Part shown: in pieces, positions 14,781 through 63,518 of the stretch
How positions within the stretch are numbered: position 1 is the stretch's first letter
How the letters are laid out: each line of letters opens with the position of its first letter
Assembly: GCF_036588685.1 (NCBI RefSeq)
Contig: NC_086377.1
Location: forward strand, 58,838,001-58,902,000
Direction of reading: 5' to 3'
Length of the DNA: 64,000 bases
Source of the DNA: Mytilus trossulus
Lineage: Eukaryota
The notes under the pieces: model-generated
What the model was told of the DNA's origin: nothing
Seen by the model: only the letters and a program-made list of their open reading frames with translations
Databases searched by the model: none
Translations under genes and position numbers: made by a program

Positions 14781-15003
14781 ATGGCGACCAAAGAAGAGGA
14801 TAATTTTCTACGCGTTGTTTACTTAAACTACCGAGTAGGAACAACGGCGCTAAGGAGGTATTTTGACAGCGTCCATCCTAATTTGCCAGCCGATTTGTCA
14901 TCTCCATCAAATAAGGCAATACTCGCAAGCCTGCACAAACCACCTAGAGGACAAAGGAGAGTATTGTACCAGGAGCAATGGGATATTTTATACCCTCCTA
15001 CAG
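14781..15003 (+). CDS. Gene B coding exon 1: N-terminal part of a DZIP3-like HEPN domain
   Basis: Acceptor at 14707-14708, ATG 14781, donor ACAG|gtaatt (phase 1); EEDNFLRV..GTTALRRYFD..LYQEQWDILYP motifs typical of the family. Confidence 0.85.
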
Positions 15004-15456
15004 GTAATTTGAAAAAAATGGTTGAAAAAGATGTGGAAAATCAATTTAACCATGCCGTAATACAATCACAGTAATTAATAATAAACACTTGCTTTATGTG
15101 AAAAGGTGTGTATTAGTATCATAAGTCGTTATAAGAGCACACAATGGAAAATAACGCCCATTTATCTGTTTAATTACATCAGAAGAGATACAAATGAGAT
15201 ACATATTTTTTGGGAAACTCCTGTAAGAGTGACCCATCACAAAAAAAATTACTAGCTCCCCCTGCCTTGGATGCCCTTAAATCTTCTAAAAACAAAAAAA
15301 AATAACTTTTGTATAGCGGACACACTTGAAAAATATCTAAATAAAAAATGTTTAAAATGAATAATTCATTAGGATCTCCTCAGATTATCATTGAAGCGTT
15401 TGCGATGGAAAGGTGAAGAAAACGATGAGATATTTGATTTTAATACTTTTTTGTAG

Positions 15457-15701
15457 GGGCACCTGTAGTTTCTTCTGCTAAATTAGATGTTACTTTAATG
15501 GTTTGTCTTCTACGGAATTTACCACCAATGGTTGCTCCACCAACCCCGAATGGATTTGATGCCTTACCACTATCTAGTGACGTGTCTAATGGTGCTCACA
15601 TAGCTCGAATAAAATATTATAAAAATTTCATTGTTTCGCATTCAAAGGATGGAAAACTATCCGATGCTGATTTCAACAAAATATGGATTGATATGGATGT
15701 G
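15457..15701 (+). CDS. Gene B exon 2: HEPN core
   Basis: ttgtag|GGGCA...GATGTG|gtatga (phase 1-0); SSAKLDVTLMVCLLRNL..PPTPNGFDALP..IARIKYYKNFIVSH..DFNKIW. Confidence 0.85.
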
Positions 15702-16099
15702 GTATGATTATTTCATCTTTTAATCTTATTCAGCATGTGGTCGTTGCGTGACATCTGAGACAATGCGATTATAACTAAGAAACTTTAAAATAAGCAAAAT
15801 AATTTCTCATTTGAATATTTCCGTATTGATATTTCTCAGTTCCAACTTTAAAGTGAGATTGTGAGAAACACTTTGACAAAAACGGTACCACTTTTACTGC
15901 ACCAGAGGTACATTAAATTATACATACTAGAGGTGAAATAATCCAAATTTCGTAACCTTATACACACGTTAAAGATCGGATCAAACAAAAAAGACATAAA
16001 AATATAGATAAATTCCATATTGACATTTCAAAGTTCCAACATACAAAACTTAAAAAAAATCGAAATAAAAAAAAAATGTCTATAACTTTTTTTTTTATA

Positions 16100-16585
16100 C
16101 TTTTTGGAATTTTTGGTTCTCAATGCTCTTCAACTTTGTATTTGTTTTGCTTTACAATTTTTTTATCTAAGTGTCATTAATGAGTCTTAAGTAGACGAAA
16201 CGCGCGTCTTAAATTATAATCCTGGAACCTTGATAACTATTTACACCACTGTGTCGATGCCACTGCTGGTGGACGTTTCGTCACCAAGGATATCAACATC
16301 CCAGTAGTCACCACTTCGGTGTTGACAAAAATATCAATTGTAAAGTAATTTTAATAAATTTGTTGTTGACAAAACTTTAATGATTTCGAAAATATAATGA
16401 TTCTCCTATCCCAGGAATGGATAACCCTTAGTTGTTTTTGGCTCGACTTTTTTTTAAATTTTTGGTCCTAAATGCTCTTCAACTATGTTCTTGTTTGGCT
16501 TTACAACTATTTTGATCTGAGCGTCACTGATGAGTCTTATGTAGACGAAACGCGTGTCTGGCGTATTAAATTATTATCCTGGTAT
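16100..16585 (+). mobile_element. Retrozyme-like tandem repeat in gene B intron 2 with two hammerhead motifs 350 nt apart
   Basis: gtagacGAAA at 16191 and 16541; second copy (16520-16564) gcgtcaCTGATGAgtct(tatgt)agacGAAAcgcgtgTCtggcgt has an intact core, first copy is mutated (ttaatga). Confidence 0.85.
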
Positions 16586-17745
16586 CTATCTACACTTGTC
16601 AATTTTTAACTACACTAATCATCAAAACTAATGTCCAACTGAAGTCATATCAATGTTTTGATGCATGTAGAGGCAAAAAGAGGCGATTATTTTTCAAGTC
16701 CAAAATGAGCTTAGTTTACCGTTAATAAACCTCACAGACTGCTATCAATTTACGAAAATTAACGAATATCACGGCCCACACCATGTGTAAATTTCAAACA
16801 ATCTAGGGCTTCCATGAATTATTTCGATTCTAATAAGACAAATACGGTCATTAAAAAACTGAAGCGAGGGTGGGTATGCTGTGTGTGTGGCTGTTCTTTT
16901 TTACTCCCTGTTGGATAAAGCTCAAATATCTTTATAAATATGTAGCTTGCGTAGGTTATTTCGTGAACAGCTGCTTGTAAAAAAACAACTTTTTAATTCT
17001 TTAAATTCTCAAACCCAACATTTTCCATTTTTTATTTACATGTTTTTCTCGTAAGCTTCCGTCAAATCCAAAGTTGACATTAAGGAGCTGCCATATTGAC
17101 TTGCTGAAATGAGTAAATATGCGAATAATGCAATAGAATAGAAAATAAAACAAAACCTACCTCAAAAATCAGTTTTAATACAAGATCATACGAATTCCGA
17201 TGGTTCACGTAACAGAAAGCTTTCAACTTTAGCGGTTTCATTTGTATGACGTCAAGTTTTGAAATGACTTAAACGCGCCAAAAAGATTAAAAGACTTTCG
17301 CTGAATTTTATTTAATTTCTATTTTGTTGATTTTTCCGAGCTCTTGTGCATTACTTCTTTTTATAATGCATACGAATAAGAATAAAAGTTATTTTGTCTT
17401 TTTTAAATTTCACTTTTTAAAACAATAAAATCGGCAAAGGGTCTGCAAATAGGTTCCAATACATGTAGATTTACGTGGGAAGTATATTGTAACAGCCCCT
17501 ATTATATATATCTCTGAGTCTGCGCTAAGTATATTTTATCGAGAATTTTATCACAGTGTTGTTTACAAAACTACAGATGCACGTCATATTAGAATATTTA
17601 ATATTCCAAATCAAAACTATTTCAAGTTGTTACACTATGATTATCAAATTAAATGATCGAAGATAATTTAAAAGAAAACTTGTAATCATATTTGTTTTAT
17701 TTTGTTAAATATAATGTTTATGCATGTTCTTATTATATTCTAAAG

Positions 17746-17968
17746 GCCATTAATGGTTTAGGAAACCAACAAGATATAACAGATGCGGCAGATGCCAAAA
17801 CTAAAGTTTTAGACTTTAAAGCTATTATGGAACACTTGGATATTAGGATGGAAATTAAGCGAAATCGTAAACGATCTTTGGAGCATTCAGGAAAAATAGT
17901 CGAGCACGCCAGCAAAATAGCAAAACTTGAAACAACTGTTGAAAATTTGAACATTGGCCATGGCAAAG
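17746..17968 (+). CDS. Gene B exon 3: end of HEPN domain + coiled coil
   Basis: aaag|GCCATT...AAAG|gtgacg (phase 0-1); AINGLGNQQDITDAADAKTKVLD...EHASKIAKLETTVENL. Confidence 0.8.
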
Positions 17969-18054
17969 GTGACGGTTAATGAATAATGTTTAATAACAGA
18001 TCTTGATGCAAGACAAATACATCACATATAACTCTTATTTCTATAGGCAGCATT

Positions 18055-18345
18055 TTGATGATCCTTTTCAAATTCGTACTTTATTATGCTTGATTTTCAG
18101 TGATACTTTGGTAAGAATTTAGATGATCCTTTTCAAATTCGTACTTTTTTATGCATGATTTTTTAGTGATACTTTGGTGAGAGTTTAGATGATCCTTTTC
18201 AAATTTGTACTTTATTGTGCATGATTTTTAGTGATACTTTGGTGAGATTTAAATATTCCTTTTTAAATTCGTACTTAATTATTCATGTTTTTAGTGATAT
18301 TTTTGTGAGAGTTTAGAAGATCCTTTTCAAATTCGTAGTTTATAT
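18055..18345. repeat. ~65-bp minisatellite, ~4.4 copies
   Basis: gatgatccttttcaaattcgtacttt...gtgatactttggtgaga recurs at 18057, 18122, 18187, ~18251, ~18316. Confidence 0.85.
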
Positions 18346-18584
18346 AACTTTTGAATCGAACACCACTGTGATTCAAAATCTTATGCATCCTGGGTAATAT
18401 TTTCAAAAGTGTACACCAAAACATCGTGATTGGTTAATAATGTCATAAACAATGGAAATTCGAGCAATGAAGTGACGTTATTTTCGTTTGAGGGTACGAA
18501 CGATGAAATTACCCATGATTCTTTAGATTCCGAAACGGCCAATTGACGTACATAATTCTTATTCTGCTATTATAACGAGTATAT

Positions 18585-18960
18585 AGATATAGGAAGATGT
18601 GGTGTGAGTGCCAATGAGACAACTCTCCATCCAAATAACAATTCAAAAAATAAACCATTATAGGTTGAAGTACAGCTTTCAACACGGAGCCTTGGCTCAC
18701 ACCGAACAACAAGCTATGAAGGGCCCCAAAATTACTAGTGTAAAACCATTCAAACGGGAAAACCAAAGGTCTAATCTATATAAACAAAACGAGAAACGAG
18801 AAACACGTATATATTACATAAACAAACGACAACTACTGTACATCAGATTCCTGACTTAGGATAGGTGCAAACATTTGCAGCGGGATTAAACGTTTTAATG
18901 GATCCAAACCTTCTCCCTTTTTCTGAAACAATAGCATAACATCACAACATAGAAAAACAT
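18585..18960 (+). mobile_element. Abundant interspersed repeat family beginning gaagatgtgg..gccaatgagacaact
   Basis: Related copies at ~2685, ~10455, ~23570 (+) and ~5537-5660, ~8090-8185, ~8330-8670, ~21830-22280, ~36930-37145 (-). Confidence 0.75.
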
Positions 18961-19071
18961 TGATTGTTCTAAAACAAGCTTGATATCAACAAAAAGTGTG
19001 AAGCCTTTATAGATGTTTTGTTTTACTTGTTTTACTAGATTAGTTAATATGCGTTCATTCTTTTTTCGTAG

Positions 19072-19143
19072 TTGAGCAATCAAGTGCAGACAATGCTAGC
19101 AATATAGCAATACTAGAAACAACAGTGGAATACATTGAACAAG
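19072..19143 (+). CDS. Gene B exon 4: coiled-coil mini-exon
   Basis: ttcgtag|TTGAG...CAAG|gtaata; 72 nt, phase 1-1; DNASNIAILETTVEYIEQ repeats the end of exon 3. Confidence 0.75.
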
Positions 19144-19329
19144 GTAATATCAATAGTTTTCTAATCGAGCTTGATGTGTTATAAATACATTAGATATTAC
19201 ACATCTAGCTACATTTTATAACAAGTTTGATGCTAGTGATAAACTTTAAGCCTTTTCCAGAGCTTTTTTTTTAACTCGTTTTAGTTGATATCTGAATATG
19301 TTTTTGTACTTTTTAATAAAATTTTATAA

Positions 19330-19532
19330 AAGAGGGACGAAAGATATCAAAGGGACAGTCAAACTCATAAATCTAAAACAAACTGACAACGCCATGGCTA
19401 AAAATGAAAAAGACAAACAGAAAAACAATAGTACATATGACACAACATAGAAAACTAAAGAATTAACAACACGAACCCCACCAAAAAGTAGGGGGTGATC
19501 TCAGGTGCTCCGGAAGGGTAAGCAGATCCTGC
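19330..19532 (+). repeat. Interspersed repeat family beginning gagggacgaaagata..agggacagtcaaactcataaat
   Basis: Related copies at ~25110-25315 and ~45866-46055. Confidence 0.7.
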
Positions 19533-19584
19533 TAAATGAGAGAAAGAGTTAGTGGGTTCATTATATTTTCATCGTTATTTTCAG

Positions 19585-19629
19585 AAGTAAAGTCAGTAAG
19601 GATAGACGTCGATGTCAATGGTCCAAAAG
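19585..19629 (+). CDS. Gene B exon 5: linker micro-exon
   Basis: tttcag|AAGTA...AAAG|gtgaat; 45 nt, phase 1-1, open (EVKSVRIDVDVNGPK). Confidence 0.6.
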
Positions 19630-19823
19630 GTGAATACTTTATATAGACTATTTCACATACTTTTTTGCTACCCCAGCGAATGGGATAAATTATTATTTTA
19701 TAGATCAACTGTCAGAATTTAGTCCATTCTATGTGGTAAATTCTCTTTTATTTTTTTATTTCAATTTCTATTTTTTTTCATAATATGATGCGGATACATA
19801 CAAAGAGAGACATATAGATTCTT

Positions 19824-19967
19824 ACACTGCAACAAGTGTATTACGATATTTCTCCACTCGAGACAGTTAAATTTTATTATTTAAAGCGCGAGGCTTGCCG
19901 AGCCCTTTAAATAATAAAATTTAACTGTCGAGAGTGGAGAAATATCGTAATACACGAGTTATAGTGT
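19824..19967. repeat. Long palindromic core of a non-autonomous element; diverged second copy at ~20500-20665
   Basis: Arms 19836-19886 and 19905-19955 are almost perfectly complementary around cgcgaggcttgccgagcc. Confidence 0.8.
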
Positions 19968-21089
19968 TGGAATCTGTTTCTCTAATGCTTTTTATCGTTC
20001 TTTTTCAAAAAAAATCAGAAAATTGTGCTCTTTTTATGCGACGTCATCAGCTAAGGTCTCCTTTTTTGATGACGTCACAATAGGAAAATTGAGAAGAAAA
20101 CAAAACATTTTGACATCATAATCAAATTTCGACTAATCATTTGCCGAGAACAGATTTTTCACTAGTGAGGAGAAATATTTTTCTCACACCGGTCAGGAAA
20201 TGTGAAAATAGCACAAAAATTAGAGAAAACTAATTTTCCATGTACAACCCTTTTATTATCAAACCAAAATTATTTAGTTACTTTCATTTTTATTGTTTCT
20301 TTTATTTATTAAAAACAACTGATTTATTAAACCTACATTGTAACTAATAAGAATTAAGCCTCAGATATAATAAGGATTAATGGATTTGAAATGCCTCTAA
20401 AGACTGGTTGGTATAAATATACATGTTGAATGACTGCTTATGTTGAAAAATGTAATATATTGTATTTCATATATATGTACCAAGTTGTACTTTAAAAAAT
20501 AGATTCTACTACTGCATCGAGTGTGAAACGATATTTATCCACTCGAGACAGTCAAATCTTCAAATTTAAAACGCGAGTCTCGCTGAGCGTTTTACATATT
20601 TATTTAAAATTTAACTGTCAAGAGTGGATAAATATCAGATAACACCAGCTTCGGTGGTGGCACCTGTTTTTGTAATGATTATCTAACAACATATGCAGGC
20701 AAACTTATTTCTTCTTTTTGATTGATCTGCAAAAAGATGTGATCTTTCTATTTGACCTCATCAGGCATGGTCGCCTTTTTTCCTGCCGTCACATTAGGAA
20801 ATTCAAAGGAAATCAAGAAAATCGACGTCACAATTTGATTTTAACAAGAACTGAAATCAAACGAATCATACGTTAATTTTTTTTTTATAAAATGGGTGCC
20901 GAAAGGGATAAATTGACGATAAATTGGAGAAATAAAATTAACTATAAGAGGAAAACAACGACACAACAGAAGCACTAAAACACAACACACACGGAAACAA
21001 ACTATAAGATAACAATAGCCATTTTCCTGACTTAGGACGGGACATTTTAAGATAACATTTTAAGCAAATCACTTAAATTTGTTCATTAG

Positions 21090-21407
21090 GTGACTTTATG
21101 GAATTTAAAGACAAACTCATACATTCAACAATGCTTGACAAAGAGGTTTTGGATAACCTAATTTCTAAATGCGTTCTGACACTAGATGACAGAGAAGAAA
21201 TTGTTAACTGTGATAACCAATCATCTCGTAACAAAAAGCTCTTAAAATTACTCATCAATCGACCATACCACACACTCGGTATACTCGTTGAAGCAATGAA
21301 AGAGTCTGAGCAAAAGAGCCACACTTTACTGCTTTCCAAAATGGAGGCCAAGGTCGAAGACAATGTTATGACATTACAAAATGAACCACTCATAGATGGC
21401 TTATCAG
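21090..21407 (+). CDS. Gene B exon 6: CARD-like death-fold domain 1
   Basis: cattag|GTGAC...TCAG|gtaagc; 318 nt; VLDNLISKCVLTLDDREEI..QSSRNKKLLKLLINRP is a CARD pattern; same length as paralogous exon 50660-50977. Confidence 0.85.
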
Positions 21408-22313
21408 GTAAGCTTTATTTAAGCGGATTAAAAAGTTGGTTATTAACAGGTAGAAATTGTTAAAGTATTTACCAAATGTATTGAAACAAAAGCATTTGTA
21501 AATAGGAAACTGCTATATACACTTTATCAATTCGTTTGAAGTATTTGAGATTGTGATTTTCTTATTTGCGTATTACTTTCGTTTAGAATTGTCCTCGGAG
21601 TTCGGAGTTTTTGTTATTTTACATTAGAGTAACTGCGAAGTAACTCATAAATCGTACTTTCGTATTAATTTGAATTGTTGACACAATTGGTAATGTTTTT
21701 TTGTTATTCAATGTTAACTGTTTTGTATTTTATCCCAGTACACCATTTTGTCCCAGACTAAAGTTTTCTTTTTGACCTTGTTCTTAATATATATTTTGAT
21801 CTTTATCGTATTTAATGTGTGTCATAGATCAAATTTACTTGTTGAGTGTACGTTTTCTTGTTTAAGTCAATATATCTTTTTAATTGAGTTAATCATATAA
21901 GTCATTGGTTTTTTTCAGTGGGTTTTTTTCATTTTTAAATGTTACATTACTCATTCATGTTGAAGCGAAGGTTGGAACCTGTTTAAACGCGTTTCAATTA
22001 TATGAACCTGGCCTAAGTAAGGAATCTGTTCAAAAGCTGTCGTTTTTTGAAGTTTATAAGTGTTTCTCGTTTCTCGTTTAGATACAGATTACAGCAATGT
22101 TTTCCTGTTTGAATATTTTAACACTAGTATATGTGCATCCCTTTGTAGCTTTCTGTTCGATGTGGGACAAAGTTACATGTGTATGGCTATACCTTAACTT
22201 ATTATTGTTTACTTTGTACACAATGTGACTTAGTTTCAGAGTTGTCAAATTAGCACCTAACCAAATCTTCTTATTTCTATATAGAGTTTTTGTTATAATG
22301 TATTATATTTCAG

Positions 22314-22628
22314 ATACAGAGAAACAAATCGTTAAAGTAATCAAGTGTTATAACACAATAGTCCATAACATTGACATTGAAAAAACTGGAATTCTATACA
22401 AACTCCATGATATTTTAAGTGAGGAAGAGAATACAGAAATGACACCAATGGATGTTTCTGTGGAAGACAGAAATAGAGGAATTTTAGGAAAAATCATTGG
22501 ACACAATACTTCATCTGCCTACAAAATCTTCCTTGAAGTTCTTAAAGAAGATAGCTGTTATAATGAATATGCTACAAAAATAGAGGAAACAGATGTCACA
22601 CAATTTGACCTCCAGTTACTAAGTATTG
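22314..22628 (+). CDS. Gene B exon 7: CARD-like domain 2
   Basis: tttcag|ATACA...ATTG|gtaggt; 315 nt; EDRNRGILGKII..SAYKIFLEVLKED; homologous to 52365-52682. Confidence 0.8.
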
Positions 22629-22707
22629 GTAGGTCAACGAACAAAATATTAAAAAAAACCCCAACAAAATTAGACATTTATAATTTATTTTTACAACAAT
22701 GTTACTG

Positions 22708-25059: not shown

Positions 25060-26336
25060 GTAAATATAATTTCAAATATTGTCATTCCAATATGTATATA
25101 TTTGACAAAAGAGGGACGAGCGAAACCACAGGGACCGTTAAACTCATAAATCGAAAATAAACTGACAACGCCAAGGTTAAAAATGTAAAAGACTAACAGA
25201 CAAACAATAGTACACAACATAGAAAAATAAAAATTAAGCAACACAAGCTCCAACAAAAACTATAGGTGATTTCAGGTGCTCTGGAATGGTAAGCAGATCC
25301 TGAATCACATGTGGCATTTGACAATGTATACTTGAAATTATGTATGTTATGCAATTATGCCTATTACCAAACTATCCGCAGATTTACGCATTTTGTGTTA
25401 ATACAAGTTCATGTTGATGAACTTGATTGGAAGATAATTAACTGCAAGTTATTATCTACTAAAAGTTTCTGTAGAACATAATACAAATTTTGGTGCATAT
25501 AGTAAAACAGGAACTGCGTCTCATTCCATATAACTTTTATTCAGACCGCTTTTTGTTGCAAAATTATAAGTTTCTTATGAACAATGATGTAGACTTTTTG
25601 TCGTTTTACTTTTTTGACGATTGTTGAGCTGTACATGTACAGACTGTGTCCCTTGTCCTTTTATAACCATCTAACTGTGTGTTGATTTGCATGACGGGTG
25701 AAGCTTATATAAGATTTCGTCATACCACAGTTTTTATTTATTTGTTTCCCTTGATATTTTATTTTTTTGTATTTGATTTGTGTTATCAAAACGAGAAACT
25801 ATTGATTCATGGTGGCTATTTTTGGCTACCAGTTTTTAAAAGTGGAAGAAGCTGGAGTGTCGCAAGAGAACCACAGACCTTTGGTAAACATACGAAAAAT
25901 CATAGTCAATAAAGAATGTAGTCGAATGCACCTTACAAGAGAATGACTCAAAATCACAACATTAGTGTTGTCGGGAAAGTGATAGAAAAATTTGACTACT
26001 TGGACATCGAAGACCATCCTAATTAAGGGTTATAATTTAGCTCCTTGGTATCATATCAACCTTCGTATATGACTGATAAAAGATATAATCAAAGTAATTG
26101 AATTATTATTCTTCAAATTATTAACTATTTTCTGTTCTCGTTTGAATCAAAACAATATTTACATGTATTAGATTATTAAAAATATTTCGAGTTTATGTCA
26201 TTTATGAAGTAAAAAATGTTATAGTTGTTCTAAACATTTATGTATTTAAAAAAAGAAAGATGTTAAATTAATAGTATTGTTAATAGAATTATAACACAAT
26301 TAATAGGCTTCATGTTTTTTTTCATTACCAACATAG

Positions 26337-29300
26337 ATTTGATGATTGATAAAGTAGAAACATGGAAAAGGGATGACAGTCTTTATATCGAAACTAGAGC
26401 GTCTAATTATGTTTTAAACTGTGTCAATAAACACTCATGTGTAAGTGTAATAGGACCGTCCGGTTGTGGGAAAACGGCTCTTGTTCGACATGTTTCTCTC
26501 CAAATGGAACAAAATGGATACACTATATTAACTGTGATCGACGCGAGAGATATAACAGATAAGTATAAATCTGGCAGAAAAACATTGTACATTGTTGATG
26601 ACATATGTGGAAATTTTACTGCCAACCAAACTCGGTTAGAAGAATGGAAAAAATCAATGGTTGACTTAAGGAGTATTTTAGAATTTGGTAATTGTAAGTT
26701 GATTTTAACTTGCAGACTTCAAGTTTTTCAAGATAAGGGGTTTGAAAATTTAGATATTTTCAAAACATGTGAATGTAACTTAATTTCTAAAGATTTAGCT
26801 TTAACAATTATTGAAAAAGAGACCATGACAGCACAGTACTTTGGGGAACATGCTTCAGAAGGATTGAAACACTTAGGGGAATATGATTTTCTCCCCCTTT
26901 TATGTAAATTTTATTATGTAGAGAAAGACAATCCACAATTTAAACTAGACATGTTTTTCAATGATCCTTTTTCCTTTTACAAATATGATTTGACTCATAT
27001 GTACAACGATTGTAAAGAAGGTAAGTACAAATACTGCGCTCTACTATTGTTAGTTATCTTCAACAACGGGTTAAAAGAGAAGAACATTACAGGTAAGGAT
27101 CCTAAAGTTTTGGAGATTATAGAAGATCTCATAGAGGTATGCGACATAGAGGAAAATATTACAGGTAGAAAACTAAAGAACCAGATTGACATTCTGATAG
27201 GAACATTTGTGACTTATGATGAAGGCACATACCAAACAATCCATGACAAGCTGTTTGATTTCCTAGCTTTTTTTTTTGGAACGCAACATCAAATTATAAA
27301 CATATTGATAAAACATGCCGAAGACAGATTTATTCGTGAGCGATTTGTTTTTAAAGATTACAATGAAAGTACACATTATTCTATACCTATTTCTGATTTC
27401 AAATTGCAATTAATGTACATGAAAAGAGTATTTGACGATATTATAGGTTCAAGTAAAGTGAATACAAACATAGTAGAAAATGAAAATTTTAAAAATGTAA
27501 AATTCCGCACTATGATACTTGATTTCATGAAAAATCTTTCCAAACATGAAATAACTATCATCATGAAGAAAGCAAACACTAATTTTCTCAATACCATGTT
27601 TGTCCTGAGACAGAATGATATACAAGACAGAGGTAAAGATATGTCTTATGAATATAAATGTTTTGGTATCATTTTACCCGATGATATGATACAGCAATAC
27701 ATTGAGAAATGGTTTGATGCTTTGACAATAACTATTTCCACAGAGGCATTTTTGGGGGAGAACAGGCTTGTCAAATGTGGGAAATTTCAAACCGCCTTGA
27801 ATTCCTACATAAGACAAATAAACGTCGCTTCTATCATTCAGACTGGAAGTTCAGATTTCCTCAATACAATGTTTGTCATAACAGAAAATGGTTCTCAAGA
27901 TATGACTCAGAAACAAAATGCACGTTTTGGTATTGATATTCCAGAGGATTTGTTACAGCACTACATTGCCAGATGGTTTGACGATTTGACAAAACATGTC
28001 GGGAGGATGATAGTAAGGAGAAATCATGGTATGAGTTACTTGCATTCAGGTAAGCATAAAACATTGATGCTTGACGAATTCATGAACAAGAATAGACCAT
28101 TGACGAATCCTACATTTCGTATTGCCCTACGCACTTACATGAGGCAGCTAACTACAGTCAAAATTGCGTCACTCATTCATACCGCAGAGGACGCTTTCCT
28201 TAATACAATGTTTGTCATGACAGAGAATGACATTAACGACAAAGCTGAGAGCCGATATGAATGGTTCGGTATTGTTATTCCTGATGAAATTTTACAACAA
28301 TACATTGAAAAATATTTTCATCGCCTGACAAACGAATATAGCGTGGTGACAGATATACATAAAAATAGAGCATTGAGAAATATAAAAGTTCACACTGCCT
28401 TACGAACGCACATGAAACAACTTACAAGAGAGGAAATCGCTTTACTTATTCAGAATTCCGTGCATATATTTTTCAATATAATGTTTGTTATGACAGAGAA
28501 GGATATACAAAATAGTGAACAAAGCCAATTTGCATGTTTTGGTATTGTTATTCCGGATGATCTGTTACAGCAATACATTCAAAGGTGGTTTGATGAGTTG
28601 ACCAAAACGCATACAGTAGAGGCTGCCATAAGTCAAAATAGACCATTGGTTAGTGACAAATTTCTAAGTTCTGTACGTACTCACTTGAGACAACTTACCA
28701 TAGAAAACATCGCTTTAATCATTCAAACTACAAAGGCAGATTTTATTGATAAATTGTTTGTGATGACCGAAGCGGATAACCGAGACAACGCTGCAAACCG
28801 ATATGAATGTTTTGGAATTGTCATTCCAGATGAACTGTTACAGCCATATATTGAGAAGTGGTTTAATTATTTAATCAAAACGTTTTTTGTAGTGTCAGCA
28901 ATATCTAAAAATAGACCACTAAGTAATGTTAAATTTCGCAGGGCTGTGCGTACACACATGAAGCAACTAACCACAAAAAGCATCGCTTCAATCATTCAGA
29001 CATCATATGAGGATTTTATCAATACAATGTTTGTCATGTCAGATGAGGACATCAAAGACAACGCTGAGAACCAACATGAATGTTTTGGTATCATTATTCC
29101 TAATGATCTATTACAGCAATACATTCAGCGATGGTTTAATGTGTTGAAAAAAACACAGTGTGTAGCAACTGCCATAGAGAAAAGTAGACCAATGATGAAT
29201 GTTACATTTCGCAGAGCTGTATGTTCCTATATGACACTACTAACCACAGAAAACATCGTTTCGATCATCGAAAATACAAACGAGGATTTTATTAATAAAA

Positions 29301-32300
29301 TGTTTGTTATGACAGAGGATAACATCAAAGACGACGCTGAAAACAAATACCAATGTTGTGGTATTGTAATTCCTGATGATTTGGTACATCAATACATTGA
29401 GAGGTGGTTTTATGATTTGACCAAATCGCAGTTTGTAGAGACCACCATAGTAAAGAATAGACCGTTAAGTAATGTTAAATTTCGTAATGATGTACGTACC
29501 TTCATGAGCCAACTTGCCACAGAAAACATCGCTTCAATCATTCAGAATACACATGAGGATTTCCTGAATTTAATGTTTGTCATGGCAGAGGATGACATCA
29601 AAGAAAACGATGAGAATCGATATAACTGCTTTGGTATTGTTATTCCTGTTGATAGGATACAGCAATACATCCAGAGGTGGTTCAATTATTTGACCAACAC
29701 GGATTCGGTAGAGGACATGATAGATCGAAATAGACCATTGTTGAACGTTACGTTTCGTTGTGCTTTACGTGACCACATAAGACAACTTACCACTGAAAAC
29801 ATCGCTTCAATCATTCAGAATACACATGAGGATTTCCTGAATCTAATGTTTGTCATGACAGAGGATGACATCAAGGACAACGCTGATAATCGATATGAAT
29901 GGTTTGGCATTGTTATTCCTGATGATCTTTTACATCAATATGTGCAAAGGTGGTTTGAAGTAACGAAGGAAACAAGTGTATTAAAAAAGACCATAGAAGA
30001 TGGAAGGTCTGTTACATATTATACCACAAGCAATGGATTGGAAATATTATTAAATAGAAGTAGACCATGGCAAAATTTTAAATTTCGTAGTGCCCTACGA
30101 ACTTATTTGAACCAGTTAAGCATAGAAACAGTCACTTTTCTTATTGAGCGTAGAGATGATTTTTTTGTCAATATAATGTTTGTCATGACAGAAGATGAAA
30201 TAAAAGACAACTCTAAGAATCGATGGGAACAAGTTGGTATCGTTATTCCCGAAGACCTACTACAAATATACATTGGTAATTGGTTTGAACGTTTGATTCA
30301 AACCAGTGAGTTCAACAGATTCATAGACCGAAACAGACCTTTAAAGAATTTTGCTTTCCGTACTGCCTTGGGAAAATTTATGAGACAAATAAACTCAGAC
30401 AAAATCGCTTTAATCATTAGGAATGCAAAGGATAATTTTATCAATAATATGTTTGTCATGACAGAAGAGGAAATACAAGAAAACTCTGCTGATCGATATT
30501 ACTGTTTTGGTATTGTTATTCCTGATAATCTGTTAGATGACTATATCAAAAGATGGGTTAATTCCTTACTCAGAACCAATGTACTAGAAAAATTCATAGA
30601 TCAAAGTAGACCACTGAAAAATGAAACATTTCGGAAAGCGTTAAGTAACTTCTTGAGACAACTAAGCGCAAAAAACATTGTTTCAATAATTACGAATGCA
30701 AAAGATAATTTTGTCAATCAGATGTTTGTTATGGCAGAGGAGGACATCAGAGACAACGAAAAGAACCAGTATAAAAATTTTGGAATTGTAATTCCCGATG
30801 ACATGTTACAACAATACATTGAGAGGTGGTTTGATGATTTGACAAAATCGAAGTGTGTGGAGGCCACCTTGAATAAGAATAGATCATTGACAAATGTTAA
30901 TTTTCGTAACGCTGTTCGTTCACACATGTGTCAGATAACTGAAGATAACGTCGCTTCAATCATTCAAACTACAACAGTTACTGCTGATTTTGTCAATGTA
31001 ATGTTTATTCTGACAGACGAGGAGATAAAGGAGAACTCTGAGAACCGATATGAATGTTATGGTATTATCATTCCTGAAGGTTTGTTACAGGATTATATTC
31101 AGAGGTGGTTTGGTGATTTAACCAAAGCGCATTCGGTAGTGGACGTGATTGATAAAAATAGACCATTAGTAAATGATACTTTTCGTAGTGCTATACGAGC
31201 CCACATGAGACAACTAACTACAGAATATATCGCTTCAATCATTCAGACAACAAATGAGAATTTCCTGAATTCAATGTTTGTAATGGCAGAGGATGACATC
31301 AAAGAAAACGCTAAACACGGACATGTTTGTTTTGGCATTGTAATTCCAGATGACCTATTACAGCAGTACATCGAGAAGTGGTTTAATGATTTAACGAAGA
31401 CCAAATCGGTGAAGGAATTTATGGATAATTGTAGGCCTTTAAACAACGGACTATTCCGTACAAGTTTGCGTAGCTACACAAAAGAACTAAACATAACAGA
31501 AATCAGTTCACTCATTCAGACTGGAAGTAGTGATTTCCTTAACACGCTTTTTGTCATGACAGAGGATGACATAAAAGAAAACACTGAAAATCAAATCGAT
31601 TGTTTCGGTATAGTAGTTCATGATGATATTTTACAGCAATACATCGAGAGATGGCTTCTTCATTTGTCTGAGAGATCTGAGACAAACAGGTACATAAATG
31701 AAAATAGACTTTTAATTAATGTTACCTTTTTTACTGGATTGCAAACTTTCATAAGACACTTAAACACAGGACAGATCACCTTTTTCATTCAGACAGGAAG
31801 CAATGATTTTCTTAATAGAATGTTTGTTATGACAGAGGGGGATATTAAAGGCAACAGTAAGAATCGATATGAATGTTTTGGTATCGTGATTCCTGATGAT
31901 GTATTTCTATTACAGCAATATATTGCGAGATGGTTTCATAGCGTGACTGAATCCAATTCGGTGACAGAATATATGAAGGTTAATCGGCCTCTGTTGAATG
32001 GTACTTTCCGGACTGCGTTGTGTAGCCACATGAGACAACTAGACAATGAAGTAATTAGAACCCTTATTCAGACCGGGACTAGTGACTTCCTCAATACAAT
32101 GTTTGTCCTGTCAGAGAATGACATAGCCATTGACAATGGTGAATATCGGGTTGAATGTTTTGGTATTGTTATTCCTGATGAGATGTTACAGCAATACATG
32201 GATAGATGGTTGGATTGCATGACAAAGGCTGACTCCGTGATAGAATTCGTAGGTGTTAATAGGTCTTCTATGGGAGTTATATTGCAAGCCGAATGGGAAG

Positions 32301-32332
32301 CATATATGAGCCAGATGGATTCAGACAAATAA
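26337..32332 (+). CDS. Gene B exon 9: nSTAND3-type P-loop NTPase followed by 17 x 91-aa tandem repeats
   Basis: catag|ATTTG; uninterrupted ORF; Walker A GPSGCGKT (26453-26476), Walker B LYIVDDICG, sensor LILTCR, PLLC, HDKLFDFL; MFV anchors 273 nt apart (28208, 28481, 29027). The nine exons sum to 7506 nt = 2501 aa + stop. Confidence 0.93.
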
Positions 32333-49936: not shown

Positions 49937-50659
49937 CATACTTGACCATCGAGTTAAAAAAAAAATGCAATTTGCAAAAACTAAAAGTATACAGTTTTAT
50001 CAACTGTTAATTAAAGAACAAATTGCATAAATTTTCATTACATGATATAAATTAGAACCTTATAGTAACCACATAGTTTTTCTTGCTTTTTTTGAAATCT
50101 TACTGAAATCTGTCATTTTTCAAATTGAATCAATTATAGCGACCATTAAAAAAACCGCTTTCATAACCGTTTTGGTAAAACAGTGACATCAAACAATAAC
50201 TGTTCTGCGCTTACATGACAAATTTATGCTTTACATTCATTATTGAAACAATTTTTAAAGGATTACAGATTTTTATCATAACTGAAGAAATATATGAGAT
50301 CTTCACACTTTAGAAATAAATTATTCTTGACTTAGATGTAGAACTTCTCAGAGATACTTTGACGAAAAGTATGGAGAAAATACGATTTGAATCATATTTC
50401 ATTGTCCTTACAAAATACATGCACATGTATGCCTAAAAGGTACGATATGTAAACTTTTTTTTCTAATTAAGCACTTATCATGTTTCATCATATGATATAT
50501 ATTAAAAGGGGCATAATCCAATTAGAATCATAACTCATCGTCCTTACACATGCATTACCTGTATGTATTTTTAAGATAAGATATGTTAAAAAAAAGGATG
50601 CGACAATCGATGATTTCTCTAATATAGCACACATCATGTATCATCTTTCTTTATTTCAG

Positions 50660-50977
50660 GTACTTACCAAGAATTCAAGGTTGACCTCATACAGTCAACA
50701 ATACTTGATACGGATGTTTTAGATAACTTAATTTCAAAGTGCATTCTAACTCTTGACGATAGAGAGGAGATTGACAGCCTTTTAGATCAATCAAATCGTA
50801 ACCAGAAACTCTTAGAAATACTGATGCATCGACCATACAATACCTTTCCTGATTTTGTTGAAACGATGAAAAAATCGGATCAAAAGTGTCACAGTTCTCT
50901 TGTTGAAAGAATGGAGGCCAAAGTCTTAGATAAAGACTTGACTTTACAGAAAGCACAACTCACAGATGAAACAACCG
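50660..50977 (+). CDS. Gene C CARD-like domain 1 exon
   Basis: tttcag|GTACT...ACCG|gtaatg; 318 nt, open; VLDNLISKCILTLDDREEI. Confidence 0.85.
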
Positions 50978-51416
50978 GTAATGTACCTTATTTTGAAATG
51001 AGTGAAACAATTTTTTTTTGTCATGTCAAAGGCTTTCATATGTTATTATTTTGTATGGATGGTGCTTAGTGTCGTGTTACGGAGCGCACATAAGCTTTTG
51101 ATTGTTCAAAGTACGAACACTCCAAAGTTTAAAGATGATAACCAAGTTCTATGCTGAGCCATGAACTGCTTGTAGTTCTTACGTGTATTACGCTTTGATT
51201 TTGTAATAACCCAATCATAGATTAACTTCGACGGATTTGTATCCACATTTTTACAATTTGGTGTCTCATGCTCTTTAACTTCTTTTTTATTTTCGTTTAA
51301 CAGCTTGTCTGTTTCAACAGCCAATGACAATTTTTCAATGAATTCACTAAATAACGGTGACTTATAGTTGCTGATCTCCAATTCTGTTAGTTAACTACAT
51401 TAAAGGATGCTTATTA

Positions 51417-52246
51417 AAGTGAAACCTGACTAAACCGAATTCTGCATAAACCGATGACCTGTATAAACCAAACATGTTCTAAAGCAGGGATGGGGTAATT
51501 GAAAATGTAATGGTAATTGAGTGTAATGCATTACAATTTTCCATGTAATTGAATTTAATGTGTAATTGAGCATTTTTTTTTAATTACATGTAATGGTAAT
51601 TTAATTAATTACATTGAAAAAGGCATGTAATGCTCAATTACTTTTGAATTACATTTCAATTACATGTACTTCTATTGTGTTAAAGATAAGGATTTATGTT
51701 TCATAATATAAATTGTAAAATTATATTTATTTTTTTCAAATATTGATATAACATACTTTTTTTAATATATAAAGTCTGTAATTTATTCTGAATTTTTTTT
51801 AATTTTCTATTGCTGTCAAAGTGTACAGACCAGAGAGATTCAGACTAAATGACACAACATTTAAATAACTAATGATTGTCACATGCCACGCTTAAACTTT
51901 GCTTACATGAATATTTTACACATTATTTATTAAATATATGTATAATATTATTAAAAAATATCATGATGAAATGTAATGTGTGATTTAACTAATTACTTTA
52001 GTAAAGTAATTGTAATTTTATTAATTACATTTCCAAAACTGTGTAATGTGTAATTAGTATAATTGATCATTTTTGCAATGTAATGTGTAATTTAATTAAT
52101 TACATTCCAATGTAATTGACCCAAAGTCTGTTCTGAAGCATCATCGTATCAACTAGTATGCGTTTTGAACCTGAAAACACCGAACATCGGTCAAAACCGA
52201 AAAAAGTGTTAAGATCGAAAAGGATCGGTTGAAACAGGTTTCACTG
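51417..52246. mobile_element. Tc1/mariner(pogo)-like MITE hosting a nested hAT-like MITE
   Basis: TA|aagtgaaacctgactaaaccga ... tcggttgaaacaggtttcactg|TA. Confidence 0.7.
51485..52130. mobile_element. hAT-like MITE with (tgtaat) subterminal repeats
   Basis: cagggatggggtaatt ... aattgacccaaagtctg, flanked by an 8-bp TSD ttctaaag / ttctgaag. Confidence 0.75.
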
Positions 52247-52364
52247 TAATAAACTATAAACGATTTTCAACTTTTTGCGTTATATTTCTAAAAGCAAGGA
52301 CATCATATCCTTTCGTAAACATTTGCTTTCAATAACGTTTATTTTGTAATCTTATATATTTCAG

Positions 52365-52682
52365 GTATAAAAGATGCTGTTAAATTAATCAAATGGTATA
52401 AAATTATAGTTCATGAAATTAGCATCGACAAAACTGGAATTCTAGACAAGCTATTTACTAAAGATGTTATAGACCGTGAGATTCATGAAAAACTTTCATC
52501 AGTAAATATGACTTCACACGAGAAAAATAGAAGACTTTTGGGAAAACTTATAAGAAAAGATATTTCGTCTGCCTTTCCAATTTTCCTTGAAGTTCTGAGA
52601 GAAGATAGCTGTTATAAGGATTATGCCGAAAAGATAGAAGAAACACATGTCACACAGAACGACTTAGAATTATTGAATATTG
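52365..52682 (+). CDS. Gene C CARD-like domain 2 exon
   Basis: tttcag|GTATA...ATTG|gtaggt; 318 nt, open; EKNRRLLGKLI..SAFPIFLEVLREDSCY. Confidence 0.82.
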
Positions 52683-52904
52683 GTAGGTTATAAATATTTT
52701 GAATATGTATCATAATGATATGAAATTTGTTACAATATAACAGATTGCTTTTTAAGATCTACAATTAGTCTTTTTTTTTAATTTAAATTGTAAAAAGTAA
52801 AATCACAAAAAGTACTGAACTCAGAGGAAAATCAAATCGAAACGTCCCTAATCAAGGCAAAATTCAAATGACAAAACACATACAAAACGAATGGACAACA
52901 TTAC

Positions 52905-56414: not shown

Positions 56415-57081
56415 GTAAATATATATTGTGTACCATTATTGATAAAATCAATACAATGTAAACTTTAAGGAAAAACTGTGTTTGAAGATTTGGAAAGAAG
56501 ATAGAGTTTAGTTTGGCCTTGTTAAATCTATTGAGTTCTTATCAACTAATTTAAATTTATGAAATACTTGAATTAAACTGCTGCCAACCTTCACAACGGA
56601 CACATTTTTTAATAGGTCAACGTACAGTGTTTAACTTTTGAAAAAGTTCTTACTGTTTGGTTCTAAATTATTGACTCGCTCACACAAAAACACATAGTAA
56701 GAACACTTACTAAAGACAAAAAGTTATTCTGTTTGGTCCTTCATGTCAAGTTAAGAAATAAACAGATAAAGTCACATAGCATAAAGTCTATCCTAAACAA
56801 AACTGGTCGCATTTTTAAAATGTTTCCGGTGGGTTACTTCATGCATGTCAAGAAGAATAATAAAAACAGTTATTCCCTCATAGTATGGCCGCCATTCTAA
56901 ATTTCCAATGCTTAACGAGATTATCCAAATAGTTAGACCTAAATGAGTCGCTATCTAAATATTGGTGCTTGTTTTTTCTTATCTGTATGTTCAAAATATA
57001 TAAAGAATAAATTATAAATGACACTTTCTCTTTTTATTTACAATTAAAATATAAACAAGTAACCAACTATATGTTCTTAAG

Positions 57082-60000
57082 ATCTTATGGTCGATCAAAT
57101 AGAGAAATGGAAGATTGAGAGCAAAATTTACGTCCAAACTAGAGCGACGGATGTTGTACTTTCAAGTATGAACTGCAACAACTGTGTAAGTGTCATAGGA
57201 CCAGCTGGAAGTGGGAAAACTGCAATTGCTAGACACGTAGCCCTCGAAATGGAAAGACTTGGATACACACTTCTAACAGTGACTGATGCAAAAGAAGTAA
57301 AAGATCTATACAAATCAGACAGAAAAACGTTGTACATTGTTGACGATATGTGTGGAAATTTTACAGCCAGCCAAAGTCGGATAGAAGAATGGAAGAAATC
57401 AATGAACGACATTAAGGGTATTCTTGAAAAATGGTAATTGTAAGTTGATTTTAACATGTAGACTTCAAGTTTTTCAAGATAAAGGGTTTACAAATTTAGA
57501 AATCTTCAAAACATGTGTATGTAACCTGAGGTCACATAGTTTATCTTTAACGTCTGAAGAAAAGGAAAAAATGACGGCAGAGTATTTCAAGGAACATGCA
57601 ATAGAAGCATTAGCTTGTTTAAGTGAATATGAGTTTCTTCCATTTTTATGTAAATTATATTATGTACAGAGAAACAATCCAGAATTTAATGTCCGACTTT
57701 TTTTGGATGATCCATTTTCATTTTACAAAAAAGAGTTGCCTAGCATGTACAATGACTGCGCAGAAGGTAGGTACAAATACTGTGCTCTACTTTTGTTAGT
57801 TATATTCAACAACAAATTAGAGGAAAAACACCTCACAGGTAAGGATCTTAAAGTTAAAGAGATTATTGAAGTTATCATAGACGTATGTGAAATAGACGAA
57901 AATATAACAGGTAGGAAACTAAAGTCCCAACTTGAAATACTGACTGGCACGTTTGTGACTTTTGATGAAGGCATCTACAAAACCATTCACGACAAGCTGT
58001 TTGATTTTTTGGCTGTTTACTTTGGAACGCAAGAAGAACTTATAAGCATATTGATAAAGTATGCCGAACCTAGATTTGTTCGGGAAAGATTTTCTGTTAC
58101 AAAAGACATCGAAAATGAATTCCATGTTATACCTATATCTGACGACAATTTGCAGATGTACATGAAACGAGTTTTTAAAGATATGGTAAGTTCATGTGAT
58201 GTTAATCATAACATAGTAGAAAATGTGAATTTAAAGAACATCAAATTACGCACTATGCTCCGTGACTTTATGAGAAATTTTAATAATCATGAAATAATTG
58301 CCTTATTGGAGACAGCGAGCACAAGTTTCTTGAATGTAATGTTTGTCATGAGAGAAGAAGACATCAACGACGAGGTTGAAAATAGGTTTAGGGAATACCA
58401 AAGTTTTTCAATTATTCTACCTGATGATTTAGTACAACAATACATTTACAGGTGGTTTGGTGATTTGACGAAATCTAATTCCATGAAGGCACATTTTAAG
58501 GATAATAGGCTTTTTAAAAGTGTAACATTCCGTATTGATTTAAACTCCTCTATGCGACAAATAAACCAAGAGACAGTTGGCTCTATCATTCGTACTGGAA
58601 GTAAGGATTTCCTAAACAAAATGTTTGTCAAGACAAAACATGATATCAAAGATTTTGCAAAGGAACAATATGAATGCTTTGGTATTGTTATTCCTGAGAT
58701 ATTTTCACAACCTTACATTGATAGGTGGTTTCAGGATTTAACAAGAAACAGCTGGGATACACGTCTTGATGAAATATTTTTTGAGGACAATTCTATCTTA
58801 TATTTATGTTTGGCACCAATTTGGTTCCGTGAAAAAACTAACTTCGAAGAAAATAGACTATTGATGAATATACCATTTCGTGATGCCGTTCGTACCTCCA
58901 TGAGACAACTAACCACGGAAAAGATTACTTCACTCATTGATACAGCAGAGGACATTTTTCTCCATACAATGTTTGTTCTGACAGAGGATGATATCATTGA
59001 CAACGCTAAGAAAACATATACAATGTTTGGTATTATTATCCCCGATGACTTGCTTCAGCAATACATTGAACAGTATTTTGATCGCCTTACAAACCCAAAT
59101 TTGATGGTAACACTCATGAAAAAAATTAGAGCTTTTAAAAATGTTAAGGGTCGCACAGCCCTGCGTACTTATATGAAACAATTAACTAAAGAGAAGATTG
59201 CTTCACTTATTCTGAATGCAGTGTTTACCTTTGTCAACAAAATGTTTGTCATGACAGAGGAGGATATCAAAGACAACACTGAGAACCAATATGAATGTTA
59301 TGGTATTGTTATTCCTGATGAATTAATACAGCAATACATTCATAGATGGCTTGCTCATTTGACTAAAACGACATCGATAAAGGTTGCTTTCGATAAAAAT
59401 AGAACAATGGAAAATGAAATATTTCGGTTTGATTTACGTAACCACTTGAAACAACTAACATTAAACAAAATTGCTTTAAACATTCAGACTTCAAGTGATG
59501 ATTTTATCAACAAAATGTTTGTCATGACAGAGGAAGACATAAAAGACAGCGGTGAGAACCAATATGAATGTTTTGGCATTGTAATTCCTGATGATCTATT
59601 GCAACAGTACATGAAAAGATGGAATGTTTGACTGACACCAGTGATTTAGAGAAATGCATAGATGCTAATAGACTATTTAAGAATTCTGCTTCTCGTACTG
59701 CCTTGTGTAACTACATGAGACAACTGAACACAGAAACAATCGCTTCACTCATTTCGGACGCAAAGGAAGATGTTTTCAATAAAATGTTTGTAATGACAGA
59801 TGAGGACATAAAAGACAGCGCTGAAAACCAATATAAATGTTTTGGTATTGTTATTCCTGATCATTTACTTCAGCATTATTTTGAGATATTGGTCAAACAT
59901 TTGACTAAAACCAGTGGGATCGAGAAATGCATAGATGAAAATAGACCATTGAAAAATGATACATTTCGTACTGGCTTATGTGATTACATGAGACAGTTAA

Positions 60001-63359: not shown

Positions 63360-63518
63360 NNNNNNNNNNNNNNNNNNNNNNNNNNNNNNNNNNNNNNNNN
63401 NNNNNNNNNNNNNNNNNNNNNNNNNNNNNNNNNNNNNNNNNNNNNNNNNNNNNNNNNNNNNNNNNNNNNNNNNNNNNNNNNNNNNNNNNNNNNNNNNNNN
63501 NNNNNNNNNNNNNNNNNN
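63360..63518. other. Assembly gap (159 N)
   Basis: Run of N. Confidence 1.

Follow-up and report, generated by a model that had tools for sequence, protein, structure and literature searches.

The question raised by the locus described here is where the C-terminal repeats of an immune-type receptor come from. The sensor repeats of NLR and STAND proteins, such as LRR, WD40, TPR and ANK, are usually regarded as ancient modules that have been recruited and shuffled. The locus is a stretch of 64,000 nucleotides (nt) from the mussel Mytilus trossulus (NCBI RefSeq assembly GCF_036588685.1, contig NC_086377.1, positions 58,838,001 to 58,902,000 of the forward strand), referred to here in its whole length as the window, and all coordinates without another reference are positions in it. 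The window contains two paralogous genes, gene 1 and paralog 2, in which an nSTAND3 NTPase and a winged helix, together with the helices between them forming the NOD, are followed by a tandem array of a repeat of about 91 amino acids (aa). Between the winged helix and the array lies one further domain, called repeat 0 (R0), to which the repeat unit is homologous. The account put forward here, which is considered likely, is that the array arose by in-frame tandem amplification of the receptor's own R0 and that ankyrin repeats were lost later; we infer a sensor role for the array.

R0 and the repeat unit of gene 1

Gene 1 contains a single stop-free frame at 26267..32329 (+), with its first ATG at 26312 and a product of 2006 aa. 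R0, the post-winged-helix domain, occupies 27290..27544 (+; aa 327-411), and the array of 17 tandem units of approximately 91 aa (273 nt) occupies 27545..32329 (+; aa 412-2006), as delimited by a unit table and a hidden Markov model (HMM). The units score 114-141 bits each with the HMM, and Tandem Repeats Finder reports a period of 273 across 28202-29956. Pairwise identity among the units is 29-62% with a mean of 46%, and identity between R0 and the units is 23-33%. In the unit tree, units 1-4 of gene 1 are positional orthologs of those of its M. californianus relative and the middle units group together; the clustering of the middle units therefore indicates later internal duplications.

The relation between R0 and the unit was established with profiles of several kinds. 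Applied to the N-terminal 411 aa, the 17-unit HMM has its sole match at aa 329-410, covering model positions 3-90 of 91 (26.7 bits, E 2.4e-10). An HMM of 30 units gives R0 36.0 bits, and 2000 shuffles of R0 have a mean of 1.4, a standard deviation of 2.0 and a maximum of 12.6 bits. A profile of single-copy R0s, built from 13 genes of the M. trossulus genome on other contigs and containing nothing from array-bearing genes, aligns to the repeat profile over 82 columns (hhalign probability 98%, E 1.8e-13). The earlier note on this DNA had described a segment directly after the motif HDKLFDFL as a diverged repeat 0, in register with the repeat and present in both paralogs. Both parts of this description are borne out, the first by the near full-length HMM match and the second by the R0 of paralog 2, which scores 31.1 bits; the count of 31 repeats is likewise reproduced as 17 units in gene 1 and 14 in paralog 2. 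In a six-frame scan of the whole window no repeat matches were found outside the two paralogs. Per-column variability is weakly correlated between R0s and units, with a rho of 0.30; one circular shift reached 0.36, and this comparison is not used as evidence.

Predicted structures give the same picture of R0 and the unit at the level of element order. In AlphaFold2 models, R0 and the first three units (R1, R2 and R3) have an identical succession of elements, namely a1, a2, b1, a loop, b2, a long a3, a4, a4' and a5. The gene 1 model covers aa 1-706 with a mean predicted local distance difference test score (pLDDT) of 87.8 and a predicted template modelling score (pTM) of 0.76, and a second model of R0-R1 has a pLDDT of 91.7. 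The loop, which is acidic, is approximately 7 residues shorter in R0 than in the units in the alignment, and in the models it is shortest in R0 among R0-R3. Units 2 and 9 of gene 1 (27818-28156 and 29795-30124) carry insertions of 19-22 aa in the stretch that joins helix a3 to helix a4. Unit 2 of paralog 2 (58573-58917) has one in the same a3-a4 part, and across the three units the insertions are approximately 19-24 aa long; MAFFT sets them in adjacent, not identical, columns. The unit-2 insertion of gene 1 (residues 568-582) is the sole low-confidence internal stretch of the AlphaFold2 model.

The unit belongs to no known repeat class tested (LRR, WD40, TPR, HEAT/ARM, ANK), whether by profile or by fold. 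Pfam searches with single units return nothing below E 0.05. Three families, DUF3977, DUF7661 and prok_STING, pass their curated cut-offs on window positions 28202-30001 and on P0001, the M. coruscus ortholog of gene 1, through summed weak unit scores. These assignments on multi-unit pieces were rejected, as single units reach 13-14 bits (E 0.05-0.1) and the totals are additive artefacts; public annotations that give these proteins such names are likely wrong. PDB searches with the NOD+R0 and unit profiles returned P-loop matches and a non-significant VPS28 row (E 0.03), and an ESM Atlas search with part of R0 gave scores of at most 0.82, which is noise level; neither was retained. Foldseek with R0-R1 alone gave no significant match (best E 0.35), and the same fragment in a VIA-wide search reached Z scores of at most 6.5 against generic HEAT/ARM/MIF4G-like chains.

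The array forms the end of the protein. The stop of the open reading frame (ORF) follows directly after unit 17, P0001 ends 3 aa past its last unit, and tblastn with three ankyrin tails found no ankyrin in the window.

R0 in the mussel receptor family

R0, a domain of 80-90 aa with a small beta hairpin and five or six helices, is a constant part of a mussel receptor family. The N-terminal 411 aa of gene 1, used as query in a homolog search, returned 66 proteins, of which those with a named source are all from Mytilus and seven are Logan-derived rows without a source; the majority are nSTAND3 proteins with ankyrin repeats and with CARD or HEPN N-termini. Among the source-named matches of three homolog searches there are no relatives from outside Mytilus. 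An HMM built from repeats only finds exactly one full-length match (positions 2/3-90) in approximately 40 Mytilus nSTAND3-ankyrin proteins, and this match begins 2-5 residues beyond the point where the NOD/winged-helix homology stops. A single hit just after the winged helix of ordinary nSTAND3-ankyrin proteins is what had been predicted for such a scan. An R0 HMM finds R0 right after the NOD even in a clade that is approximately 26% identical in the NOD (20-39 bits), and it also matches further divergent members. Taken over all clades, R0 lies 2-5 aa past the NOD-winged helix in approximately 140 Mytilus proteins, and at least 101 scored matches in the M. trossulus genome, out of 488 candidates, continue through R0 in one open frame. 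The wording that the array amplifies the NTPase module's own subdomain is thus upheld for the mussel family only, and what has been shown does not extend to nSTAND3 proteins at large.

The ordinary Mytilus paralogs (e.g. P0019-P0063, L013-L026) share the NOD-winged helix-R0 part with gene 1 at 35-47% identity. Like gene 1, they have CARD or HEPN N-termini and a single large exon for both NOD and C-terminal region. They differ in what follows, with one R0 and then ankyrin in the ordinary paralogs and R0 plus 17 R0-derived units without ankyrin in gene 1. The sharing of one 6-kb exon by NTPase and array, which had been read as fitting an amplification within the exon, is consistent with it but non-specific, because this exon structure is found throughout the family.

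The single-copy form is very common in comparison with the array. The nSTAND3-R0 family in the M. trossulus genome is very large. A first look gave 488 candidates, which lie on many contigs, and the 101 that were scored all have E <=1e-76; dense clusters lie on contigs C8 (54-69 Mb), C11 (2.9-3.9 Mb) and C10 (8.6-9.2 Mb). Arrays in this genome are confined to the chromosome-scale contig C5, at 58.06-62.91 Mb. The repeat profile matches 56 proteins among 1.84 billion representatives; the source-named ones are Mytilus (55) or a Styela row, and most rows are without a source name. The Styela clava protein, P0109, was rejected, since its Cys-rich repeat gives 21 tiny matches, which fall on profile positions 15-59. 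A further set of proteins from ENA and JGI/IMG metagenomes (P0185-P0189, P0210-P0221) have NOD, R0 and ankyrin at approximately 30% identity and group with the M. trossulus paralog P0190. They are annotated in their source as EcfA2 or uridine kinase and probably derive from mussel host DNA within metagenomes of environmental or symbiont samples.

Direction of change and rival explanations

Trees of the NOD and of the units bear on the direction of change. A NOD tree of 109 sequences unites all 22 multi-unit proteins in a single clade (97 in the Shimodaira-Hasegawa-like approximate likelihood ratio test, SH-aLRT) and the other 87 are single-unit; an apparent second unit of P0012 in the first unit count was not confirmed on recheck. 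When divergent members are added and the tree is rooted at its midpoint, the multi-unit clade (99) sits nested at a depth of three nodes, with P0204, the most divergent sequence, on the far side. In the unit tree, which has 104 units, the 66 repeats all fall into a single clade with the nine R0s of multi-unit genes (98). With the R0 backbone constrained to follow the NOD tree, trees that have the repeats in other positions are rejected (difference in log-likelihood 37-47, approximately unbiased (AU) test p 0.005-0.027), and a constrained tree that unites the repeats with their own clade's R0 is not rejected. Together with the homology of R0 and the unit, the nested multi-unit clade and the grouping of the repeats with that clade's R0 support the proposal that the receptor duplicated a domain of its own and recruited no foreign repeat.

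The composition of the multi-unit clade shows which C-terminal region came first. P0026 is the earliest-branching multi-unit protein and has the fewest units, with ankyrin after R0 and two or three further units. Proteins of the sister clade have 4-12 units ahead of their ankyrin repeats, and the clade of the window has 7-18 units (three in one sequence of 561 aa) without ankyrin. The occurrence of array and ankyrin together in P0026 and the sister clade therefore indicates that an ankyrin sensor was already present in the receptor when the array arose. The proposal that the sensor itself arose by duplication of the post-winged-helix domain is accordingly supported as to the origin of the array and needs correction as to the starting point, as the ancestor already had ankyrin repeats.

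The alternative that survives best, although it is improbable, reverses this direction. An ancestral array would have collapsed: R0 would be the cap, or first unit, of that array, and the other units would have been lost from the single-unit nSTAND3-ankyrin genes, which number in the hundreds. The unrooted tree contains one change between multi-unit and single-unit states, and if the root lay on that branch, the multi-unit stem, a single loss and a single gain would be equally parsimonious; the unit data alone, moreover, leave the position of the distant R0 clade unfixed. Against a collapse, midpoint rooting and the divergent paralogs (P0204, P0064, the far clade and an 'extra' clade) place the root far from the multi-unit clade. 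Single-unit genes are very numerous and are spread over at least 12 contigs, whereas the multi-unit genes number approximately seven and lie within 5 Mb of C5. The repeat HMM scores highest on the R0s of its own clade (26-47 bits), lower on other R0s (10-30 bits) and approximately 0 on the far clade, and the multi-unit protein that branches earliest is the one with the fewest units.

Several points weigh against amplification from R0 as the explanation of the array. The root was set by the midpoint and divergent paralogs, every homolog with a named source being from Mytilus. For the constrained trees, IQ-TREE was run in its -fast mode with three seeds per tree. The unit alignment alone, with its 89 columns, cannot place the distant R0 clade, and in unconstrained analysis a position of the repeats on the far-clade side is not rejected (AU p 0.56). 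Gene conversion could have drawn the R0s of multi-unit genes toward the repeats. The apparent structural likeness of R0 and the units is one of element order in predicted models, and profile searches of the PDB detected no sequence relation of R0 to the second helical domain (HD2) of any solved STAND protein. A sensor function of the array, finally, is argued by analogy with other STAND receptors.

A second alternative, somewhat less probable still, derives the units from a neighbouring paralog. Unequal crossing-over would have imported the R0 of another gene and expansion would have followed, with no slippage within the gene. The family members do lie in tandem clusters, and an array of the sister clade shows a fusion of this kind. 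In this clade (P0008-P0016; L027-L029, on C5 at 62.75-62.91 Mb), the array is broken by approximately 330 aa of non-unit sequence, which holds a remnant of an R0 tail and the first ankyrin repeat. The remnant is followed by a second copy of the end of helical domain 1 (HD1) and the winged helix, then by a second R0 and more units; the copied HD1 end and winged helix are 30% identical to aa 229-520 of the window protein (blastp E 5e-36) and have lost the conserved His. The interruption resembles the product of a head-to-tail fusion between two tandem paralogs, each of which already had R0, units and ankyrin. The array junctions in the window, in contrast, are clean and without any winged-helix or ankyrin remnant, and in the trees the repeats fall with their own clade's R0. 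An imported unit would in any case still be an R0 of the family and not a foreign one, which makes this a variant of the preferred explanation.

That a foreign repeat was recruited, or that R0 and the unit are alike by chance, convergence or composition, is scarcely credible, since the low R0-unit identity and a generic helical fold with only weak HEAT/ARM-like matches stand against full-length in-register matches in both HMM and profile-profile comparison, shuffles that stay far below the R0 score, an identical order of secondary-structure elements, and the absence of the unit outside these receptors among the representatives searched, where the Styela row amounts to tiny summed matches.

Under amplification of the receptor's own R0, the ancestor would have had a NOD-winged helix, one R0 and then ankyrin repeats. 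In one lineage, which in the M. trossulus genome would be the one confined to C5, R0 would have been duplicated in frame and then amplified as 273-nt tandem units. The array would have expanded between R0 and the ankyrin repeats, one sub-clade retaining both; the sub-clade of the window would then have dropped ankyrin, leaving the 17-unit R0-derived array as its entire C-terminal region. By analogy with other STAND receptors, the array may act as a ligand-sensing, autoinhibitory solenoid that keeps the NTPase closed, with the variable acidic loop and the insertion-tolerant a3-a4 site as a candidate binding surface. Ligand binding would free the NTPase for nucleotide exchange, oligomerisation and CARD/HEPN signalling. 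The boldest form of this account, in which a new superstructure-forming class of repeat arose from the arm domain of the NOD and replaced ankyrin as the ligand-recognition surface in one mussel lineage, with the stages still alive as genes, is offered tentatively, with confidence falling a little short of even.

Known receptors, gene structure and the remaining window

Gene 1 is a mussel NLR-like STAND receptor of the nSTAND3 clade, as seen from Pfam, motifs, fold and architecture. The nSTAND3 P-loop NTPase (Pfam PF20720) lies at 26384..26833 (+; aa 25-174) and scores 85.9 bits (E 3.1e-24) against a cut-off of 27.2. Its Walker A motif GPSGCGKT is at nt 26453-26476 (aa 48-55) and its Walker B motif LYIVDD at nt 26585-26611 (aa 92-97). 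Helical domain 1 and the winged helix, delimited with the AlphaFold2 model and VIA-align, follow at 26834..27289 (+), where the model has helices at residues 166-294, a beta hairpin at 300-309 and a helix at 312-323. The His motif of the winged helix, IHDKLFDFL, is at aa 310-318 (nt 27239-27265), and H311 is conserved in at least 90% of 69 family members. The top Foldseek match of the gene 1 model is EfAvs5 (PDB 9jap, E 3.8e-7). VIA-align gives Z scores of 15.4 for NLRC4, 14.7 for NOD2 and 13.9 for NLRP3 over model residues 1 to approximately 369. These alignments of the NOD extend beyond the winged helix into the HD2 of the three proteins and into the first half of R0, and alignments to solved STAND chains reach only to about residue 369, i.e. 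the first half of R0.

R0 lies in the position that the HD2 or arm has in NLRC4, NLRP3, NOD2 and Apaf-1, immediately behind the winged helix and ahead of the sensor repeats. R0 and these HD2 domains differ in having no detectable sequence similarity, and R0 alone has no specific fold match. We know of no tandem amplification of HD2 in the NLRC4, NLRP3, NOD2 or Apaf-1 families, and literature searches found none in these families. Likewise, an R0 domain or an arm-derived array was not found described in the literature on nSTAND3, on Mytilus STAND/ankyrin receptors or in the papers that define the nSTAND families.

Bacterial and fungal systems provide further comparisons. The bacterial Avs5 (SIR2-nSTAND3), solved as EfAvs5, has the same Pfam NTPase family, nSTAND3 (bioRxiv 10.1101/2025.07.08.663546). 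It differs from gene 1 in its effector, which is SIR2, and in its sensors, which are TPR, Sel1 or PPR-like. Fungal NLRs have been described with ANK, TPR or WD repeats that are highly conserved internally (PMC13449251, PMC4986451). In these proteins, as in the mussel gene, the C-terminal repeats of a STAND protein are amplified in frame and in tandem, and the number of units varies among paralogs. The fungal arrays, however, amplify repeats that were pre-existing and widespread, whereas the mussel unit comes from a non-repeat core domain of the receptor itself and has no Pfam family. The mussel array would thus represent a different route to sensor repeats, in which a non-repeat core domain is copied in frame into a solenoid. 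The intermediates, namely a single R0 with ankyrin, an array before ankyrin and an array alone, are alive in one genus and can be compared directly. In addition, R0 and the repeat define an unannotated domain family that is without a Pfam model and is present, as R0, in hundreds of mussel immune-type genes; a model of it would improve the annotation of bivalve immune repertoires. If the array is a sensor, the family would also offer a tractable system for studying the origin of new recognition surfaces.

Gene 1 has a tripartite architecture, with HEPN_DZIP3 and CARD exons upstream and the NOD and array on the large exon. The upstream exons, at 14781..22629 (+), code for a DZIP3-type HEPN and a CARD region. 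They have limits of about 14781-15005, 15453-15701, 17746-17958, 19071-19178, 19584-19640, 21089-21406, 22307-22477 and 22576-22629, and were found by tblastn of the N-terminal 480 aa of P0001 against the window, with 70-93% identity exon by exon; they were located singly. P0001 itself is 92% identical to the window ORF over aa 1-411 (NOD-winged helix-R0), and Pfam places HEPN_DZIP3 at aa 53-179 and CARD at aa 286-348 of it. The large terminal exon, at 26337..32332 (+), comprises the NTPase, winged helix, R0, 17 repeats and the stop codon. Judging from the sequence, it probably starts at approximately 26337 after an AG; the P0001 alignment starts at 'DLMIDKVE' (nt 26336), right after a pyrimidine tract and the AG at 26335-26336.

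Paralog 2 has upstream CARD-region exons at 50659..52683 (+; about 50659-50967, 52358-52531 and 52630-52683), and tblastn of the N-termini of P0001, P0003 and P0006 on the window gave no match to HEPN exons for it. Its large exon, at 57081..62207 (+), encodes a NOD, winged helix, R0 and 14 units and consists of four open pieces in three frames, with frame breaks near 57412-57428, 59595-59631, 60257-60281 and 61596-61717; the pieces were searched separately, with the frames unrepaired. NOD aa 9-124 and aa 119-419 fall in different frames. The R0 of paralog 2 lies at 58036..58287 (+), matches positions 3-90 of the 17-unit HMM and has 57% identity to its counterpart in gene 1. The 14 units follow at 58291..62192 (+), one of them split by a frame break. 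Paralog 2 is probably a pseudogene; alternatively, its frame breaks are assembly indels. A run of 159 N is found at 63360-63518, and the window as a whole has a GC content of approximately 32% with long non-coding stretches.

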